64,000 nucleotides of DNA from Bispira polyomma (lineage: Eukaryota), in contig OZ287752.1 in the NCBI GenBank assembly GCA_965649765.1, positions 60,574,001-60,638,000 of the forward strand, read 5' to 3'. Under the pieces are notes generated by a model. That model was given only the letters and a program-made list of their open reading frames with translations. It had not been told where the DNA came from and ran no database searches. Of the stretch, positions 53,788-62,862 are shown in pieces. The stretch's first letter is position 1, and every line of letters starts with the position of its first letter. The position numbers and the translations under genes were made by a program.

Positions 53788-56221
53788 TGTTGTAATACGA
53801 GTTTTAGTTGTAAGCCAAATCCGGCTCTCGTCCAGTTGTTGATATTTGCAAATGCACGTAAAGAATAATATATTATTGTTTCTAGTTAAACTGTTTCATT
53901 ATATAACATAATGGCAGCTGTGGGATAAAAGCAACCATTGAAGACCTGCCTAAACTTGTATAAAAAGAGTCTGCATTGAGGGATAAGTTTAAGCTTTTTG
54001 AACAGGGAATAGAACTATTCTTTATAGTAAACAAACAGTAGACAAACACAAATGCTATTATCTAATAACAGCTTTAGATGATGATGCTCTAGAGGAATTT
54101 AATTCTTGGGTCCTACAAAGTGGCTTAGTAGAGAGTTACAAAGACGTAGTCAAAAACTTTAAAGATGGCTAGAAGAAGGCTAGATTGCAGGTACACTTTA
54201 TGCATCAGAACCGGGATGAAAATCTAGATGATTTGTGACCCGATGCAGAACCCAGGCATTGAAATGTGAGTTTCAAGACATCAAACTCGAAAGTCGCATT
54301 ATTGAACAAATAATCGCCAGTATGCCCATTGGGAAATTCTAACGAGAACTTTTAGGTAAGGACAATACACTCACACTAGAGCAGACCATAGACGCAAACA
54401 CAAATACACAGTTTAGTGCAGAAAAACTCAAACATATAGCAGCCGCAAATACGTCAGTATCAACAGATACTGTCAAAAGATCAGTAGAATGGAACCAGAA
54501 ACAGTCACGTCATAAAAACTGTTGTGCTCATGCCCATCAAGAGATGCTTGCCCAGCAAGATATTACAAAATGTCATGCTTGTCAGCATATCGGACATTGG
54601 AAAACAGGCTGCCGTAGCTCCAACCAGCAAAATTCCTTTCAGCAAGGAACACATGCCGATCAAAACTTTCGAAACTGAGGCAGAATGCAATCAAGACCAA
54701 GTAAGGGAAGGCCAAACAAAAGGACTGTAAACACTGTCAACCAGGCTGATGTTATACATGATGACCAACAGGAATTATGGCAGGGCACCATATATGACAA
54801 TATTAACATTTGCAACTACTCAGCAGAGTCAAGCAGAACCAAAGTATTTGTTACCATGAGGATTTTTCCTAGAAATAAAAACAACATAAAGCAATACCTT
54901 AGGGCAAAGGTCGACAGTGGTGCTGAAGGAAATACACTTCCTGTTCGTGCATCCTACAATATATTCCCAGACAAGCTCAATCAAAATGGCTCACCGGCTG
55001 TGAAACAAGGTATAGGAGCCTACCTGACAAAATACAACAGCACAGAGCTGAAACGCTACGGACAAGTGTAAATTCAAGCAAACCGTTTGCAACACACAAT
55101 TCTATGTGGTGGATCCGCCGGGACCACAGTTGCTTGGTTTACCAACTTGTGAGAGAATAAAAATATCAGAACTTCACTGCAATGTGACAGGATAACATAG
55201 TAATCACATCAAAGACAGTGGTGAAATAAAGCCTATCAACACCAAGGATGATCTAATAAACAATACCCTAATCCATAGACCCACCAAGAAAGTACCCATT
55301 GCACAAGCTTGATCAAATCAAGCAAAGACTGGATCGAATGGAGCAACTTAAAGTGATCCGCAAAATAACACAACACACAGAATGGTGTGGTAGCCTAGTT
55401 TTCGTCTTTAAGCCTGATGGCTCCCTGGGGGTTTGCCTAGACCCAGCTAGGCTGAACAAAGCTAACATTAGATGCCCACACAAAATGCCTTACCTTAAAG
55501 AACTGAACTAAAAACTGTCCAATGCAACTGTTTTTAGCCAGCTTGATGCCAAATCTGAATATTGGGCCATCCGACTAGACAAAAATCGTCAGTAACTCAC
55601 AACTTTCAGAACACCACTGGGCAGATATTCCTTCCCTTTGCCTTCTATTCTGGTTGAATGTCTCCCAGGATATTTTCCAGCAGGCAATGGACAGCATCCT
55701 CGAAAACTGCCCCGATGTCATCAACAAGGCAGATTACAGATTCACAAATATAAGTATTAATACTTATAAAATATGCAGACTCTGATAGATGAATTGTTTT
55801 GTTCATTGACTCTTTTAATGACAAGTTCCTCAGATCAATATGTCTATAATTTGTATAATAGTTGTTACCACTAAGTAATTAAAAACTTCATCATTTAATT
55901 GTGTAATGGCACTGATGACTTTACCCAAGAGTCATAGTTGTAAATCTTGTCAACAAACACTGTAATTGAGCTATTCTATAATTTAGTAGTAATAGTGATT
56001 GTTTTTCCATTTTTTTCATTTCTAAATTATAAATTCAGTTACAGAACTATGAAATCTTAAATTACATTAACTGCTCTGCAAGGTTTAATGTTGTTAGAAT
56101 GGAGATGTTGTAGTTTCAGTTGTAACCCAAATCCAACTTGCGTCCGGTTGTTGATTTTTGCAAACACACATGAATAAAAGATTGGGGTTTCTAGTTTAAC
56201 TATTTGTTTCATTTTATAGCA
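53788..56221 (+). mobile_element. Decayed, internally deleted Ty3/Gypsy LTR retrotransposon (Mag-like)
   Basis: LTRs at 53788-53908 and 56106-56221 (TGTTGTA...CA, about 120 bp, diverged). 5-bp TSD cttac/cttat. PBS (taa)TGGCAGCTGTGGGAT resembles the complement of the tRNA-Leu 3' end. Purine tract AGAATGGAGA precedes the 3' LTR. Confidence 0.92.
53930..55735 (+). pseudogene. gag-protease-RT remnant of the Gypsy element
   Basis: Gag-like TRCRTQALKCEF...RIIEQII, zinc knuckle CHACQHIGHWKTGC, aspartic protease AKVDSGAEGNTLP, and RT motifs KPDGSLGVCLDPARLNK, FSQLDAKSEYW, TTFRTPLGRY, SQDIFQQAMD. Many stops and frameshifts. Breaks off at the catalytic xADD motif; no RNase H or integrase seen. Confidence 0.92.
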
Positions 56222-57818
56222 CTTATACCACTAGGGTTTAGATCACTATGAAATTAACAATAGAACATGCTCCATTAAGCTGGCTTTTTGTGAATCTTTG
56301 TAAGTCAACAGGTATATTGGACCACCAATTTAGAACTGTCACAAAGTGGCCAATATTTGCTGAGCAATTGCATGATCAACAGTATAAAAAATGTATATTG
56401 ATCCACTCAAAATACGAGAGTGAATTGAGATGGTTCAGACTTCAAGGAGTCCTTTCATACTTAACCGATTCCAGCTTTCATCACTTTGTAAGTTTTCATT
56501 ACATCGCTTCCATCGCTTTGTAGTTTTTATTGATAATCTGTTAAAGGTTTTTTTTTTTCAAATATACCAGTGATTCATGTTGAAATGACTCAAAATTCTG
56601 CTGATAATGTGAAATTCATCTGCGTTAAATAGACTAAATCGTGCTTCTTAGCATTCCACAGCGAATGTCTTGCCTATATACCTAAATATCCATAAACTGA
56701 TAGAAACTATTGTTTTGGGGTTTGTTTTTCTTTTCAAAGTTTTACAAATGTATGGAATGTCCATGGTTTTGTGTTCAGTTAACCGGCTTAAGAATTATGG
56801 CCACAACACCAGCATTTTTGTTTAATACTATAGGTTTACTAAAGAAATATGGGCATTTTATAAGATATATGCACTGTTTGATGTATGTGACTAGTAGCAT
56901 GGGAGAGAAACTTGGCTGCCATAGCATTTACACCGATGTTTTTTTCTTATTCTCAGACTACGCTTCCTTTCAGCATGTTTTTCTCGGCCGACGTCGGCTG
57001 ACATTAGCGAAGGCTAAATGTTTATAATTAATAAATACAGGAAATGCATGAAACAATAATCTTAAGGTAATAATAGATGATAAATTCATTTTATGGTTCC
57101 ATGTTTTAGCTTATAAAGTAATTCATCAGAATTATATTTTCATTGTTTGAGTTCCAAGAAGCTGTTCCAAGATACATAACTTGTTTTTTTTAAATGTAGT
57201 TTTTTGCACAAGCCTCGACATATCATATTTTTTTTTTGCAAGAAACCCTATTTACATATGGTTACAGCATTGTGCTAAAATCCAGGGTCAACTACAAAAC
57301 AATACATAAAAAATGTTGACATGCTGTTGTTATTCATTCACCTTACCCCTGGAGCTTTGCATCCCAGTGCAACGTCATATGGTGGATAATTAGCCAGGAA
57401 AATGTTTTTGTTTTATATATTCTCACTGGTATTGGAGTTTATATACCACTTAAAAATATTCAAGCTCTTTAAAAAAAATTATATTAAAGATTTCTATACG
57501 TAGTTTACGTTTTGGTTTGTTTCATTAACCTCAATGCAACATTTTACACTTTAAAGTAACAAAACCTCATTGGATTTAGTCACCCACTAGGATTTAACCA
57601 GAAAGCATGAAGTGACAATGGTTTTTTGTTTGTCTCTGCTTATGCTATAGAATAGGATCAATGTATATGGACTTTCCACTTTGCTAGAGATGTTACTTCA
57701 GGGTAAATGATCAAGGAATACATGTAAACCACTGATTTCAGGGTAAATGATCAAGGGGTAGATATAAACATCTGATTTGATGAGACTATTTTGTTTGAGA
57801 GATGTGACAACTTTTGTG

Positions 57819-57909
57819 ATGGATATAAAATATGCTTCTTTGTATTTTGTACTCTACCTTCTTCAATTTATCAATGGTGGGTATTTACAATTATATCAGG
57901 CTGCAATGG
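57819..57909 (+). CDS. C-type lectin-like membrane protein, exon 1 (signal peptide)
   Basis: gtgATGG start, encodes MDIKYASLYFVLYLLQFINGGYLQLYQAAM(G), donor G|gtatgt phase 1. An alternative phase-1 donor G|gtgggt follows 57876. Too short to appear in the ORF track. Confidence 0.7.
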
Positions 57910-58390
57910 GTATGTTAGATAGGTTTTATGATGTTTAAATGATATCTTTTTATATTTAGACTTTTGTGTAAGTTATTTTTCCAAGTTTTCTGTGGGTAAA
58001 CAACACAGGTTTCATCAGAAAATATATGCATGTATTTTTCTCCACCACAAAATAAAAAAATTAATTGTGAAAAAAAAAATGCCAATGCGCATTCGTCAGT
58101 AATTTGCAGCTGTAATTCACATTTGTCTGTAATTTTAAGTTTTTTTGTTTGTTTGTTCTTGCTGATTGTCACAAGGATTCCACAAAAACTAGTGAAACAA
58201 TTTACATGTAATTTGATGGAGAGATTGAAAAGGATCCACGGCTAAATACATTATATTTTTGGATCAAAATAGAAGGGCATATCCATGAGTTTTCTTTCGC
58301 TTTTTGGCACTCTGGTGTCTTGGAAGAGGTGTGCACTCTATAGAGTATCCCTCTATTTTGTCATTAAAATGTATGTTATCTGTGTTCTAG

Positions 58391-58471
58391 GAGGGGAGTA
58401 CACCTTCTGGATATGTGGAGCACGGGCTGGGAGTGGGTGGACGTGGCAGTGTGGTCTTGAGATGGGGCAAG
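58391..58471 (+). CDS. C-type lectin-like protein, exon A (beta2 WIGL-equivalent and WxW region)
   Basis: tgtgttctag| ... CAAG|gtaagg, 81 bp, phase 1-1; GGEYTFWICGARAGSGWTWQCGLEMGQ. Confidence 0.85.
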
Positions 58472-58862
58472 GTAAGGACTGCCTGATGTTGTATGTCAGA
58501 TTAGGTTAGTTTTTGTGTTCAACGTCACCTTTCAACACGTTCTTGTGTCATACAATTGCAGGACACTAGACAGGCTAGTTAGTTAGTCAAGGTTTTCTGC
58601 TCTGCCAAATGCCAGCCTTTAGCAAGTCTATTGCCAACCGTTCAACTTACTGGCAATGGCTGGAGATTTGAACCCACAACTGCAGTGGCAGCAGGTGAGT
58701 AAGTTATAATAACTATATTACCAAGACCCCTTGTGTGGTGTTGTAATGTAAAGATATTATCAGTGCTAACCATACAATATTGTAGGCGGGTTCCTTTTAA
58801 ATTAGGCTTTAACATAGCTTTCAACACTATTTCATATTATATCAGGTGGTTTACTGGTGGAA

Positions 58863-59118
58863 TTTGAATTTGAATTGGGATAATTAACGTCCACTCTAGT
58901 AACGGTTTAGGTTATATTTGGACGGGTAGTTGGAAACGCTGGAGGAAACACTGCATACAGTTGATCAAGGTTCTGCACTGAATCCAGCGGCTCACACTAA
59001 GGACCTACCACCTTTCCCACATAGGCATCGACGGAAGTCGAACTCAAGCCTCTCAGAGGTGAGAGACCAGTGATTGTGAAGCGCAATGCTTGCTAACCAC
59101 TAAGCCATGGCGGCTCAC
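58863..59118 (-). mobile_element. Full-length young tRNA-derived SINE with a 14-bp TSD, nested in an older SINE within an intron
   Basis: TSD gtttactggtggaa at 58849-58862 and 59119-59132. A-box TGGCTTAGTGG, B-box GTTCGACTTCC, (AAATTC)n tail. Confidence 0.92.
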
Positions 59119-59550
59119 GTTTACTGGTGGAAGTGACTCTCAGATTTCATTGGTAGATAAAACAAGCCTTATTTGTACTGAATACCAGAGGGTATCCTCA
59201 GAGATGGAATGCTTATGATATGAAAGTGATAATTATAACTACAAAGCCATCCCATCTATACTAGCGGAGAAAATCAGCGTGAGTAAATTGATCGATTATG
59301 CCTATGAAATAAATCATTTGTCTGACCAGCTCAGTATAGTGTGTCACTAAGGATATTGTTGCTTTATAATAAGCTATAATTATACAAAGAAATGTACTTT
59401 AAGGAGAAACCAATATGCAAAAACGTGCATTATTTTTGTATAATGGCAACTGCGAAATGTTTTAACTTTATCTTAAACTTTGTCTATAGTATTTCCACAC
59501 GTAGATAATGATCATGCCAATTGCCATTAGTCTAAATTTGGTGTTTTCAG

Positions 59551-59697
59551 ACATTGAGACCACCTTTGTGGGCTGGTCAGAAGGTTCTGATCCACAAGAC
59601 CTCACTAAGGACGCCCTGGCTATGGATGATGAGGGGGACTTCCTGTATACACCACTCAAGGCCACTGACATAGTCCACCGCACCATGTGTGAAGTTC
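59551..59697 (+). CDS. C-type lectin-like protein, exon B (long loop to the terminal CE motif)
   Basis: gtgttttcag| ... GTTC|gtaagt, 147 bp, phase 1-1; DIETTFVGWSEGSDPQDLTKDALAMDDEGDFLYTPLKATDIVHRTMCEV (FxxWxxGxxP ... xCE pattern). Confidence 0.85.
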
Positions 59698-60510
59698 GTA
59701 AGTCTATAAAGACGTGTTTACCCAAATATACTGGCTTTTATCATGTAAAATGCTCCCTTTGTATTCTTGTATACTTCATGAAATGGACATCTGATTATTT
59801 AAAGGTGACAAAACGCTCTCAAAATTGACGAATCATTCTGAATTTGAAAAAGTCTGTTTCTAATTGGAAAAGGGGATGGAGGAGAGTACCAACTCACCCA
59901 TCTGAATGTACACATTGTCCACACGTTATCTCCAGTAAATATTATGGTATTAAAATGAAGCGACTGCTTCTGATATCAATGCCTTGCTATGTCCATGGAC
60001 TAAACGATTGCATCACTGATTCTGCTGTTGCTTTTTAGAAGATGTTTAGCATCAATATGTAAAAGGGATGATAACAATAATAATATCAGTTATATTTTGT
60101 AAACTTTAAAGAAATAATAACGCCAAATCAAGAAAGATGTGCAGTAAATTTGCCTTAAGACTGGCTAGCTTACCACTATTACATATATTTGTACAACCAA
60201 TTTTTCTTTTAAAGAAGGCCCTTCCAATAACTGCCACAGTAAAGGTTTTGGCTTTAGTCTGCACATGGCACTTCCACTGATCTAGAAGTATACCACTAAA
60301 GATTTATAATCGTATATCAGTTGATATGGAAAATAATACATAAAATTGGTCCATTACAGGGCTATGTAGAGCGATATATCGCTCGATCGCTCGACTCTGA
60401 AGCTATATTGACTTTGTAACGTGTCACCATGTTTCACCCATTGGAATTCCTCAATTCTGTTATTAGATGTATTAACATTGTGTTTAATGATGCCCTTTTC
60501 TCTCTTGCAG

Positions 60511-60720
60511 GTGTACTAGGTGACTGCCCAGATGGGTGGGGCCGTATCATCTATCAGTCCGATTCCTGCTGGCAGTTGATCTTTTACAGTACCGGCTACA
60601 GTTGGAGTGAGGCAAATCAGGCATGTCGTGATCTGGAGGTGTTGGATGCTGCACCATATCTATGTGTGATCAGTTCTGTTGATGAATATGAGGCCATCAG
60701 AAGCTGGCTTAGTCCACTCT
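60511..60720 (+). CDS. C-type lectin-like protein, exon C (canonical N-terminal half: beta0, beta1, alpha1, alpha2)
   Basis: cccttttctctcttgcag| ... CTCT|gtaagt, 210 bp, phase 1-1; VLGDCPDGW...SCWQL...YSWSEANQAC...YLCVISSVDEYEAIRSWL. Confidence 0.92.
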
Positions 60721-61150
60721 GTAAGTGAAATCTATTTTCACATATTCAACTCTAAGTGAGGTGTATATCCCTATCAACTACTGGCTTAGTTACTACTATA
60801 ATTGAAGTGTATCTATCTATGGGCAACTGGCTTAGTTCATACTTTAAGTATAAGGAAAGGCCCTTTTTTCCTATTGTGTATTTCACCAAGAAAAAAAAGA
60901 CTTACTTCCTACTGTAAGTTTAGTGTATATTCTTATCATGAATTAGCTTACCTCCTACTATAAGTGAAGTGTATCTCCCTATCAGGGAATGGCTTAGTTC
61001 ATAGTGTATCTTATTATCATGAACTGGCTTACTTCCTACTATAAGTGAAGTGTATCACCCTATCAGGAACTGGCTTAGTTTCGACTTTAGTTGAAGTATA
61101 TCTCTCTATTAAGTAATGGCTTAGTTCCTACTGTAAGTAAAGTGTATCTT
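60695..61150. repeat. About 45-bp degenerate minisatellite derived from the exon C / intron junction
   Basis: The unit ~ATCAGGAACTGGCTTAGTTCCTACTATAAGTGAAGTGTATCTCCCT matches the exon end ATCAGAAGCTGGCTTAGTCCACTCT|GTAAGTGAAATCTAT. Confidence 0.8.
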
Positions 61151-61182
61151 TCCTTTGTTAATTCTTTGATTTCACATCACAG

Positions 61183-61236
61183 GTGTATCCTGCCGTGAAA
61201 ATAATGCACGGCTGCAGCAATCACCGACTACAATTG
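61183..61236 (+). CDS. Possible 54-bp exon E of the lectin-like gene
   Basis: Acceptor ttctttgatttcacatcacag| and donor ATTG|gtgaaa (moderate), phase 1-1, open frame: (C)VSCRENNARLQQSPTTI. Confidence 0.5.
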
Positions 61237-61644
61237 GTGAAATATAGTGACAGTATAGTTTGTAGATTGCACAAAAGATCGTGACATTAATCTTTCTATT
61301 CAGATTTCTTAAACCCATCGCATTTTATCAGTTAAATGTAACACACATTTTAATATCATATAATGATGTTTTTATTGGGGAAGTTTGTATATACAAACAT
61401 CAGTGTCTGATTGCCACAAAAAACTGGTGTAATTTTCCTTGGCAATAGGCTATTTTCCCACCTTTCAATGGAAATACATTCCATGTTCGGGGTTCCTAAA
61501 AATACATGTCAAAGCTATTTTTCTTGCTAGAAGATGTGATAATATTTTGCATATATAACACAATCAACTAGTATACAACATCCATTTTGTTTGTTTGAAT
61601 ATGTGTAATACATACACCTAAAACCTGTCATCTTTCTGTGATAG

Positions 61645-62291
61645 TGCCTCCAAGACACCCAGTTAGTACCACCGCCCATCCAGAAAACACAACACAATAT
61701 GAAACAACTACTTGGTATGTGGAACCCAAGTCAAATGCAGAAACTACTGAGGTGGAAAGCACGACATCGAGATATACTATACTTCGCACAGAAACGCCAC
61801 ACTATAGCTCCAATAGAATTCCCCACAGCTCCCGTACAACACCCTATGACCACAGCACACCACAATCTAGTACTACAACTTCTGGATATAGGTCGTCTAT
61901 AGATTTTACATCAACAGAGGACATCGTATCAGCTGACTTTACTAAGGTCAGTTTAACAACTTCTCGTCCTACTTTGAGTGAAACATCAAATCATGTTTAT
62001 GAAGAACCGATGACTTCCGTTAGAACAGGAAGTGACATTCCGGAAGTGCGCCCCTTATTAAGCTTGTATATAGACAACAGCGTGGCGCCAAAGGGGATTG
62101 AGCACCTGAATCCTGATAAAAGAGCTTTTGCAATAGGTGTCGGGGTCTTAGCTATCTTGCTGATGGTCGGGCTTGGAATATTTATTTGTCTCATGGATGC
62201 ACCGACATTTGTGAGGGACTTGAAAAAGGGCCGTAGAAATATCCAACACTTTTTGAAGTCAAAGAAGATTAAAGGAATACGGATGTGTTGA
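61645..62291 (+). CDS. C-type lectin-like protein, last exon (Thr/Ser-rich stalk, transmembrane helix, basic cytoplasmic tail)
   Basis: Acceptor tctttctgtgatag| phase 1; T/S-rich stalk; TM AFAIGVGVLAILLMVGLGIFICLM; stop TGA; AATAAA at about 62372. The joined CDS is 1176 nt (391 aa), or 1230 nt (409 aa) with exon E, both in frame. Confidence 0.88.
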
Positions 62292-62862
62292 TAAAATGTG
62301 AGGACTATAGATATTTACCGATTGCTGTTAATTGTTGTGTATTGTATTTTACAAAATACCAGTAGTTTTAGAATAAATTATTTTATTCTTAAATTAGTAA
62401 TTGTTTTGCAAAATGGTTAGTTTCATATAGTTGTTTACAGTATTTTATGGACATAATACATTTGTCGGCCAGACTTGTGATGACCAGTTTCTGTAAAGAA
62501 AACCATCCCCAGATCATTGATTGCCCTTATAATTTAAAAGTAAGACAATAAATAGTTCAGTAAAAAGTCACAAATTTGTTTTGAAATCTTTATTATAAAA
62601 TCATGTGCATTTTAGAAGGAAGCTCAACTTTTTTGTTCAATTATTAAAATATATACAGATTCTGCTATAATCAACCACTTGATCTTCGAGGACAGGAGTC
62701 TCGTGTGACTCCATATGCAAAATGTGTCGCATTTTCTTTTTTGCATCAAACATTTTATTTCTGATTCTTATTCACAAAGGTTCTGTGGGTTTTTTTATAT
62801 TTATTTGATCAGTACACTCAATAATTCTTAGTGTTCATCACCAGAGGTCGTTGTTCAGGGCA

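Follow-up and report, generated by a model that had tools for sequence, protein, structure and literature searches.

A conserved invertebrate gene family predicted to encode a membrane receptor with a circularly permuted C-type lectin domain

We analysed a stretch of 64,000 nucleotides (the window) from the genome assembly of Bispira polyomma (GCA_965649765.1, contig OZ287752.1, positions 60,574,001 to 60,638,000). Near its end lies a predicted gene of five coding exons, which we call SP, A, B, C and E (Table 1). All exons have canonical AG/GT ends. Exon SP ends in phase 1 and the exons A, B and C are 81, 147 and 210 nt long, thus they are symmetric phase-1 exons. SP has two alternative donors, GTGGGT and GTATGT, and either of them gives a complete frame of 380 or 391 aa. 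As no RNA run contains the locus, the splicing is predicted. An earlier note had read these exons as a C-type lectin domain (CTLD) with its two halves in swapped order, and the motifs are where the note placed them. An additional exon at 61183, also suggested by the note, is unsupported: its frame runs into stops at about 61243, it would need a weak GTGAAA donor at 61237, and no homologue was seen.

Table 1. Predicted features of the locus (positions within the window).
Position	Strand	Feature	Remarks
57819..57876	+	Exon SP, predicted first coding exon, signal peptide	Alternative donor at 57909; in-frame upstream ATG at 57780; only hydrophobic ATG-donor candidate in the 10 kb upstream of exon A; no homologue found
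58391..58471	+	Exon A, CTLD β2 (WIC in place of WIGL) and start of the long loop	Cys at 58414 and 58450, probable family-specific disulfide; orthologous exon in L055 at 65% identity
59551..59697	+	Exon B, rest of long loop, β3, β4 and β5	β5 Cys 59688; no β3/β4 cysteines; no EPN/QPD/WND; Pro kept in S-D-P (59586); orthologue in L055 at 56% identity with the same introns
60511..60720	+	Exon C, CTLD N-half	β0 Cys 60525, β1 Cys 60567, α1 Cys 60624, extra Cys 60663; α2 with invariant Glu
60705..61149	+	Degenerate ~46-bp tandem repeat in intron C-E	Resembles the 3' end and donor of exon C
61183..61236	+	Possible optional 54-nt exon	Weak donor; unsupported
61645..62291	+	Exon E, Ser/Thr-rich stalk, one TM helix, basic tail	39% S+T in first 120 aa; TM near 62139-62195; tail of ~31 aa with family D-x4-RD[LF]K motif; stop TGA 62289-62291
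62372..62377	+	AATAAA, candidate poly(A) signal	Another at 62547; motif match only

The exons of the window and the paralogous exons of the same genome have no Lectin_C hit in Pfam, and the CTLD assignment needed family profiles and structural models. We searched the open reading frames of the window with profiles built without any window sequence. Exon C (E = 2.6e-13), exon B (E = 1.2e-5, profile 28-74) and exon A (E = 0.011, profile 2-21) rank first, with nothing else under E = 0.9. With hhalign, exon C matches columns 5-61 of the canonical domain (96.2%, E = 2.3e-9), and an exon of the family sequence L053 hits PF00059 (4-34, E = 1.5e-5). Exons A and B, in contrast, are by sequence alone only weakly CTLD-like (hhalign probability 7.3%, P = 0.005), and the C-half profile found no CTLD among the PDB sequences but only chance matches to antibodies and SOX2. 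However, the W-x-[GC], W-x-W, F-x-x-W, Pro and terminal CE landmarks occur in CTLD order and spacing.

We then folded the two halves separately. For the C-half (exons A and B), 49 of the top 50 of 48,161 chains are of the CTLD fold, all matched on the C-terminal half. The best Atlas shape match (TM 0.54) is Lectin_C and 23 of 30 feature hits point to CTLD. We note that this model, which was built with L053 as the first row, is of low confidence (pLDDT 57, best Z 3.5, rmsd above 3). For the N-half (exon C), the top 11 rows are CTLDs, matched on the N-terminal half. The matched ranges tile the same solved structures end to end but in reversed order, for the N-half and the C-half, respectively, CLEC5A 70-123 and 123-185, SPL-2 4-61 and 62-134, and dectin-1 117-173 and 174-242.

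The swapped order is not confined to a single gene, which the earlier note did not see. Three paralogues, P1, P2 and P3, lie 27 Mb away at 33.58-33.94 Mb and have the same order, which is also found in two other assemblies (ENA ERZ22147071 and JGI 3300072926, GC 46%). A third assembly has orthologous exons A and B. In total, the order C-half then N-half is conserved in eight copies, five in four genes of this genome and three in the two other assemblies. P1 contains two units, and in P1 and its orthologue a Thr-rich spacer of 127/172 aa lies between the first N-half and the second C-half, which defines the unit as C-half then N-half. The link from the β5 cysteine to the first cysteine of the N-half is 5-8 aa in all eight units, against 11-22 aa between canonical tandem CTLDs of this genome. 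We found no other half exon in about 410 kb scanned around the loci or by genome-wide profile searches, although the latter score only the best candidates and a very divergent upstream half could be missed. dN/dS is about 0.18 for exons A and B against their orthologues in L055 and 0.20 for P1 against L052, another sequence of the family; the exons are under purifying selection.

Only exon-sized gene calls were found when we looked for a full-length or spliced protein, scans of JGI metagenomes confirmed nothing, and a phage collection contained no match. A tree of the N-half exons, in which one row was in the wrong frame, had no supported branch and was discarded. The first exons of the paralogues were not identified; a conserved DNA block about 1 kb upstream of P1 and its orthologue has no shared open reading frame.

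We suggest that the locus is a functional gene for a type I membrane protein with a signal peptide, one circularly permuted CTLD, a mucin-like stalk, a TM helix and a short basic tail (probability about 0.85). That the two halves close into one domain is inferred from the fold, in which β5 and β1 are neighbours, and from the short link, as only the separate halves were modelled. The swapped order, the opening of the chain at the α2-β2 loop and the short link from β5 to β0, as proposed in the earlier note, are supported. The note was also correct in that the cysteines of the two outer disulfides are retained, and those of the α1-β5 pair are present in all eight units. However, the inner β3-β4 pair, which is invariant in the canonical alignment, is absent in all C-halves of the family. 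A new cysteine pair in β2 and the long loop probably replaces this bond; P3 lacks both cysteines of the new pair. The new termini would lie in the α2-β2 loop, so that the stalk attaches after α2 and the domain sits on it at a different angle. Without EPN/QPD and an equivalent of WND the protein is probably not a canonical Ca2+ lectin and most likely is a Ca2+-site-2-independent adhesion or recognition receptor for a protein or a noncanonical glycan.

The permutation appears to have arisen before the split of the sampled species by rearrangement of symmetric phase-1 half-domain exons. The earlier note favored tandem duplication and loss of the outer halves. This remains an inference since no intermediate was found, and a direct swap of two symmetric phase-1 exons fits equally. 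Of the canonical C-half exons, the four we checked mostly seem to start in phase 2, so phase-1 boundaries are not general in this genome.

Other explanations appear unlikely. The gene could be a remnant of a multi-CTLD gene in canonical order, in which an undetected upstream N-half pairs with exons A and B and exon C is a dangling half. The signal peptide exon is indeed only a prediction, without transcript, and the paralogues lack identified first exons. However, no N-half was found in 58 kb upstream in the window, 19 kb before P1, 48 kb before P2, 25 kb before P3 or 6 kb in L052. This reading would also need a dangling terminal half with all cysteines conserved in six genes and, in P1, a Thr-rich insert of 127-172 aa inside a domain. 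Equally doubtful is that the halves complete each other between two chains, as a domain-swapped dimer, or between successive units. β1 and β5 bring the termini together in the fold (PMC7618208), so a short link may suffice, and the odd cysteine is not conserved. It is still less likely that exons A and B are an unrelated module which has replaced the CTLD half. The weak sequence signal, the low Z and the loss of the inner disulfide and the sugar motifs would allow this, but the structural matches and the landmarks argue against it and the matched range starts exactly where that of exon C ends. A reordering of the transcript or protein, by back-splicing, trans-splicing or ligation as in concanavalin A, is allowed by the symmetric exons and there is no RNA to exclude it, yet it is very improbable since linear splicing already gives a complete frame and the conserved order and link length need no reordering. 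Misassembly or a pseudogene is largely refuted: although a very high-copy repeat at 58.9-59.1 kb breaks the read-derived contigs between exons A and B, one Logan contig in each of three runs (two samples, one study) covers 59085-62600 with exons B, C and E and without differences, four loci and other assemblies share the order, dN/dS is about 0.2 and there are no stops.

Compared with the long-form CTLD (PF00059; e.g., CLEC10A, CLEC5A, struthiocalcin-1 and the bivalve SPL-2), all secondary-structure parts are present once, with the β0-β1 and α1-β5 cysteines, the α2 Glu and the tryptophans of β2 and the long loop, but they are ordered β2-β5 then β0-α2. Known topological variants of the fold involve segment swapping (PMC3779223) or loop loss and not a change of sequence order. 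Natural circular permutants are known for other folds, that is, saposin/swaposin, DNA methyltransferases, concanavalin A and PDZ (PMC3320104, PMC13552848). There, too, halves are swapped in a fold with adjacent termini, and duplication and loss or exon shuffling are the proposed routes, although concanavalin A is permuted after translation. In the gene described here both the cut and the new join fall on phase-1 introns. We found no paper describing a permuted CTLD in a literature search which did not extend to the CP databases. It is possible, and somewhat more likely than not, that this family is the first natural circular permutant of the C-type lectin fold, with rewired disulfides and a new attachment point that changes how the binding loop faces away from the membrane.

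The CTLD is one of the most common recognition domains of animals, and reviews treat its adjacent termini and "loop-out" orientation as universal (PMC7618208). If the halves close as inferred, a selected, multi-species family with the chain opened at α2-β2 shows that the fold tolerates permutation even after losing one of its two hallmark disulfides. As both the cut and the join fall on phase-1 introns and a canonical gene in the same genome has an N-half exon with matching boundaries, the exon-level route to circular permutation becomes testable with more genomes. Such domains escape Pfam, so the lectin repertoires of invertebrates may be undercounted.

We analyzed the predicted gene exon by exon. 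The window lies at positions 60574001-60638000 of contig C5 of a 1.035 Gb, 75-contig animal assembly (G000) and contains no N. The exons proposed in the earlier note are present with AG/GT ends. Exons A, B and C are symmetric phase-1 exons, and the exon lengths add up to a frame of 380 or 391 aa, depending on the donor of the signal exon. Exon E encodes a Ser/Thr stalk, one TM helix and a basic tail. The note had also listed an alternative acceptor in front of exon E. This acceptor leads to stops unless a weak donor is used, and we therefore regard it as unsupported. The coordinates of these and of neighboring features are collected in the table.

Positions of the predicted exons, of individual cysteine codons and of further features in the window and at related loci
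Feature	Position	Remark
Signal exon	57819-57876 or 57819-57909	two possible donors
Exon A	58391-58471	part of the C-half
Exon B	59551-59697	part of the C-half
Exon C	60511-60720	N-half
Exon E	from 61645	stalk, TM helix, basic tail
Alternative acceptor	61183	weak donor at 61237
Cysteines for β0-β1	60525, 60567	
Cysteines for α1-β5	60624, 59688	
Cysteine in β2	58414	where WIGL has Gly
Cysteine following the W-x-W	58450	
Direct repeat	window 57697-57778	two copies of 40 bp, just upstream of the signal-peptide ATG
Very high-copy interspersed repeats, SINE-like	window 58880-59110 and about 60000-60150	in introns A-B and B-C
Decayed LTR-retrotransposon-like gag/pol fragments	window 54343-55720	with stops and frame breaks, upstream of the gene
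Short tandem repeat of the 3' end of a CTLD half-exon plus its splice donor	window 60705-61149; L053:1520-1660; L051 (minus strand, about 40-350)	three unrelated loci; amplified in the following intron
Paralogue P3	L035:5708-8747 (C5:33.94 Mb)	long insert after α1
Short duplicate of the start of P1's first C-half exon	L023:9215-9260	about 200 bp upstream of that exon
Conserved non-coding block	L023:8022-8381 and L052:5490-5819	62% over 370 columns, about 1 kb upstream of the first C-half exon; possible promoter or 5' UTR exon
Two near-identical copies of a P2-like stalk/TM exon	C5:33.778 Mb and 33.874 Mb (L031, L033)	frame break, no lectin halves within about 28 kb upstream; decayed duplicates
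Intronless RhoA-like ORF	L036:630-1265 (C8:40.44 Mb)	18 kb upstream of another member of the TM-tail family that has no lectin halves nearby
Intronless open frame of 936 aa	C5:12.531-12.533 Mb (L012-L015)	about five canonical CTLDs in tandem

The earlier note had described a single gene. Using exon C and the TM tail as queries, we found paralogues 27 Mb away on the same contig. P1 (33.58 Mb) is arranged as C-half, N-half, Thr-rich spacer plus C-half, N-half, stalk and TM, whereas P2 (33.63 Mb) and P3 run C-half, N-half, stalk and TM. In these genes the C-half is one exon, and the A/B intron is special to the window gene. Related sequences are also present in other assemblies, whose hosts are not named. 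An orthologue of P1 in ENA ERZ22147071 has the same layout. JGI 3300072926 (GC 46%) has a C-half, an N-half (44% identical to exon C) and the start of a stalk on one 2.5 kb contig. ENA ERZ27264458 has orthologues of exons A and B with the same intron and ERZ23498364 has a C-half exon. Selection is purifying, with a dN/dS of about 0.18 for A and B against the orthologous sequence L055 and of 0.20 for P1 against its orthologue L052. We note, however, that several synonymous distances are saturated and that these values are rough.

Both halves are related to halves of C-type lectin-like domains. The N-half alignment matches canonical CTLDs of this genome at columns 5-61 of 137 (hhalign 96.2%, E = 2.3e-9) and CLEC10A at residues 3-51 (E = 1.2e-4), and the N-half exon of the family sequence L053 passes the PF00059 cut-off on positions 4-34. 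By sequence the C-half is only weakly similar (P = 0.005 at columns 70-109). We aligned a template-free model of the C-half (first row L053, pLDDT 57) to 48,161 chains. Of the top 50 chains, 49 are CTLD-fold proteins and all align on the C-terminal half, although the best Z is only 3.5. The ESM Atlas agrees by shape (TM 0.54, Lectin_C) and also by features, the latter being weak evidence on the scale of that method. The model of exon C of the window gene (pLDDT 70) matches N-halves. In chains matched by both models the ranges abut, that is, CLEC5A 70-123 and 123-185, SPL-2 4-61 and 62-134, codakine 1-56 and 56-126, ASGPR1 152-205 and 205-278, and dectin-1 117-173 and 174-242. The gene is therefore predicted to encode one complete CTLD with its halves swapped at the α2-β2 loop. 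This supports the reading of the earlier note, a circular permutation opened at this loop, and extends it to a family. As the splicing is predicted without RNA and the joined domain has not been modeled, we put the probability of an intrachain circular permutant at about 0.85.

An alternative would be that further half-domains are hidden near these genes. Family and canonical half-profiles were run without filters over 12,842 ORFs, taken from the window, about 290 kb around the paralogues, L052 and L053. Only the known exons were found, apart from a partial repeat of the L053 exon end. Leave-out profiles confirm this for the window. The introns between the last N-half and the stalk hold no C-half, and genome-wide profile searches, which score only the best candidates and could miss a very divergent half, added only one canonical gene at C1:40.76 Mb. 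The strongest internal argument comes from P1. Its spacer of 127 aa (172 aa in the orthologue) lies after the N-half, while the link from C-half to N-half is 5-8 aa in all eight units, against 11-22 aa between canonical tandem CTLDs in this genome.

A misassembly that has swapped the blocks [A,B] and [C,E] is excluded. In each of three runs (two samples from one study, which is possibly the source of the assembly) a single Logan contig covers 59085-62600 with no differences, so that in the reads B precedes C and C precedes E. Contigs over 57000-58889 cover the signal exon and A, as one contig in two runs and as three overlapping contigs in the third. The only break is a very high-copy repeat at 58.9-59.1 kb.

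Both the cut and the join lie on phase-1 introns. A canonical gene in this genome has a phase-1/phase-1 N-half exon with matching boundaries. Thus the raw material exists, though other canonical genes which we checked appear to use phase 2. Duplication with loss of the outer halves, the route favored in the earlier note, and exon shuffling are the recognized routes to such a permutation (PMC3320104). No intermediate was found and a tree was uninformative, so either route is possible. The two units of P1 are a later duplication of the permuted unit.

Circular permutation as a process and the CTLD fold are both known. In full-text searches, which did not cover most subscription papers, we found no report of a permuted CTLD. 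Known variants of the fold involve segment swapping (PMC3779223). The 2026 CIRPIN survey does not mention CTLDs in its text, although its database, which spans 845 CATH topologies, was not inspected. The protein described here differs from canonical CTLDs in the order of the halves and in the inner disulfide, and from Ca2+-dependent CRDs in the motifs.

We suggest that the domain works in the following way. From established structures it is known that β1 and β5 pair and bring the termini together (PMC7618208), so a short link may be able to close the old ends. The cysteines for β0-β1 and α1-β5 are kept. The β3-β4 pair, which is invariant in the canonical alignment, is absent. Instead there is one cysteine in β2 and a second one after the W-x-W. 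P3 lacks both, which suggests that they bond, although this is one event only. EPN/QPD and WND are absent and therefore canonical site-2 sugar binding is unlikely. An acidic turn after β3 and the α2 Glu are conserved, however, and could bind a cation. The tail motif is conserved in all paralogues. We infer that the protein works like a non-canonical CTLD receptor, that is, a cell-surface recognition or adhesion receptor held out on an O-glycosylated stalk, which is attached after α2 and so presents the long loop at a non-canonical angle.
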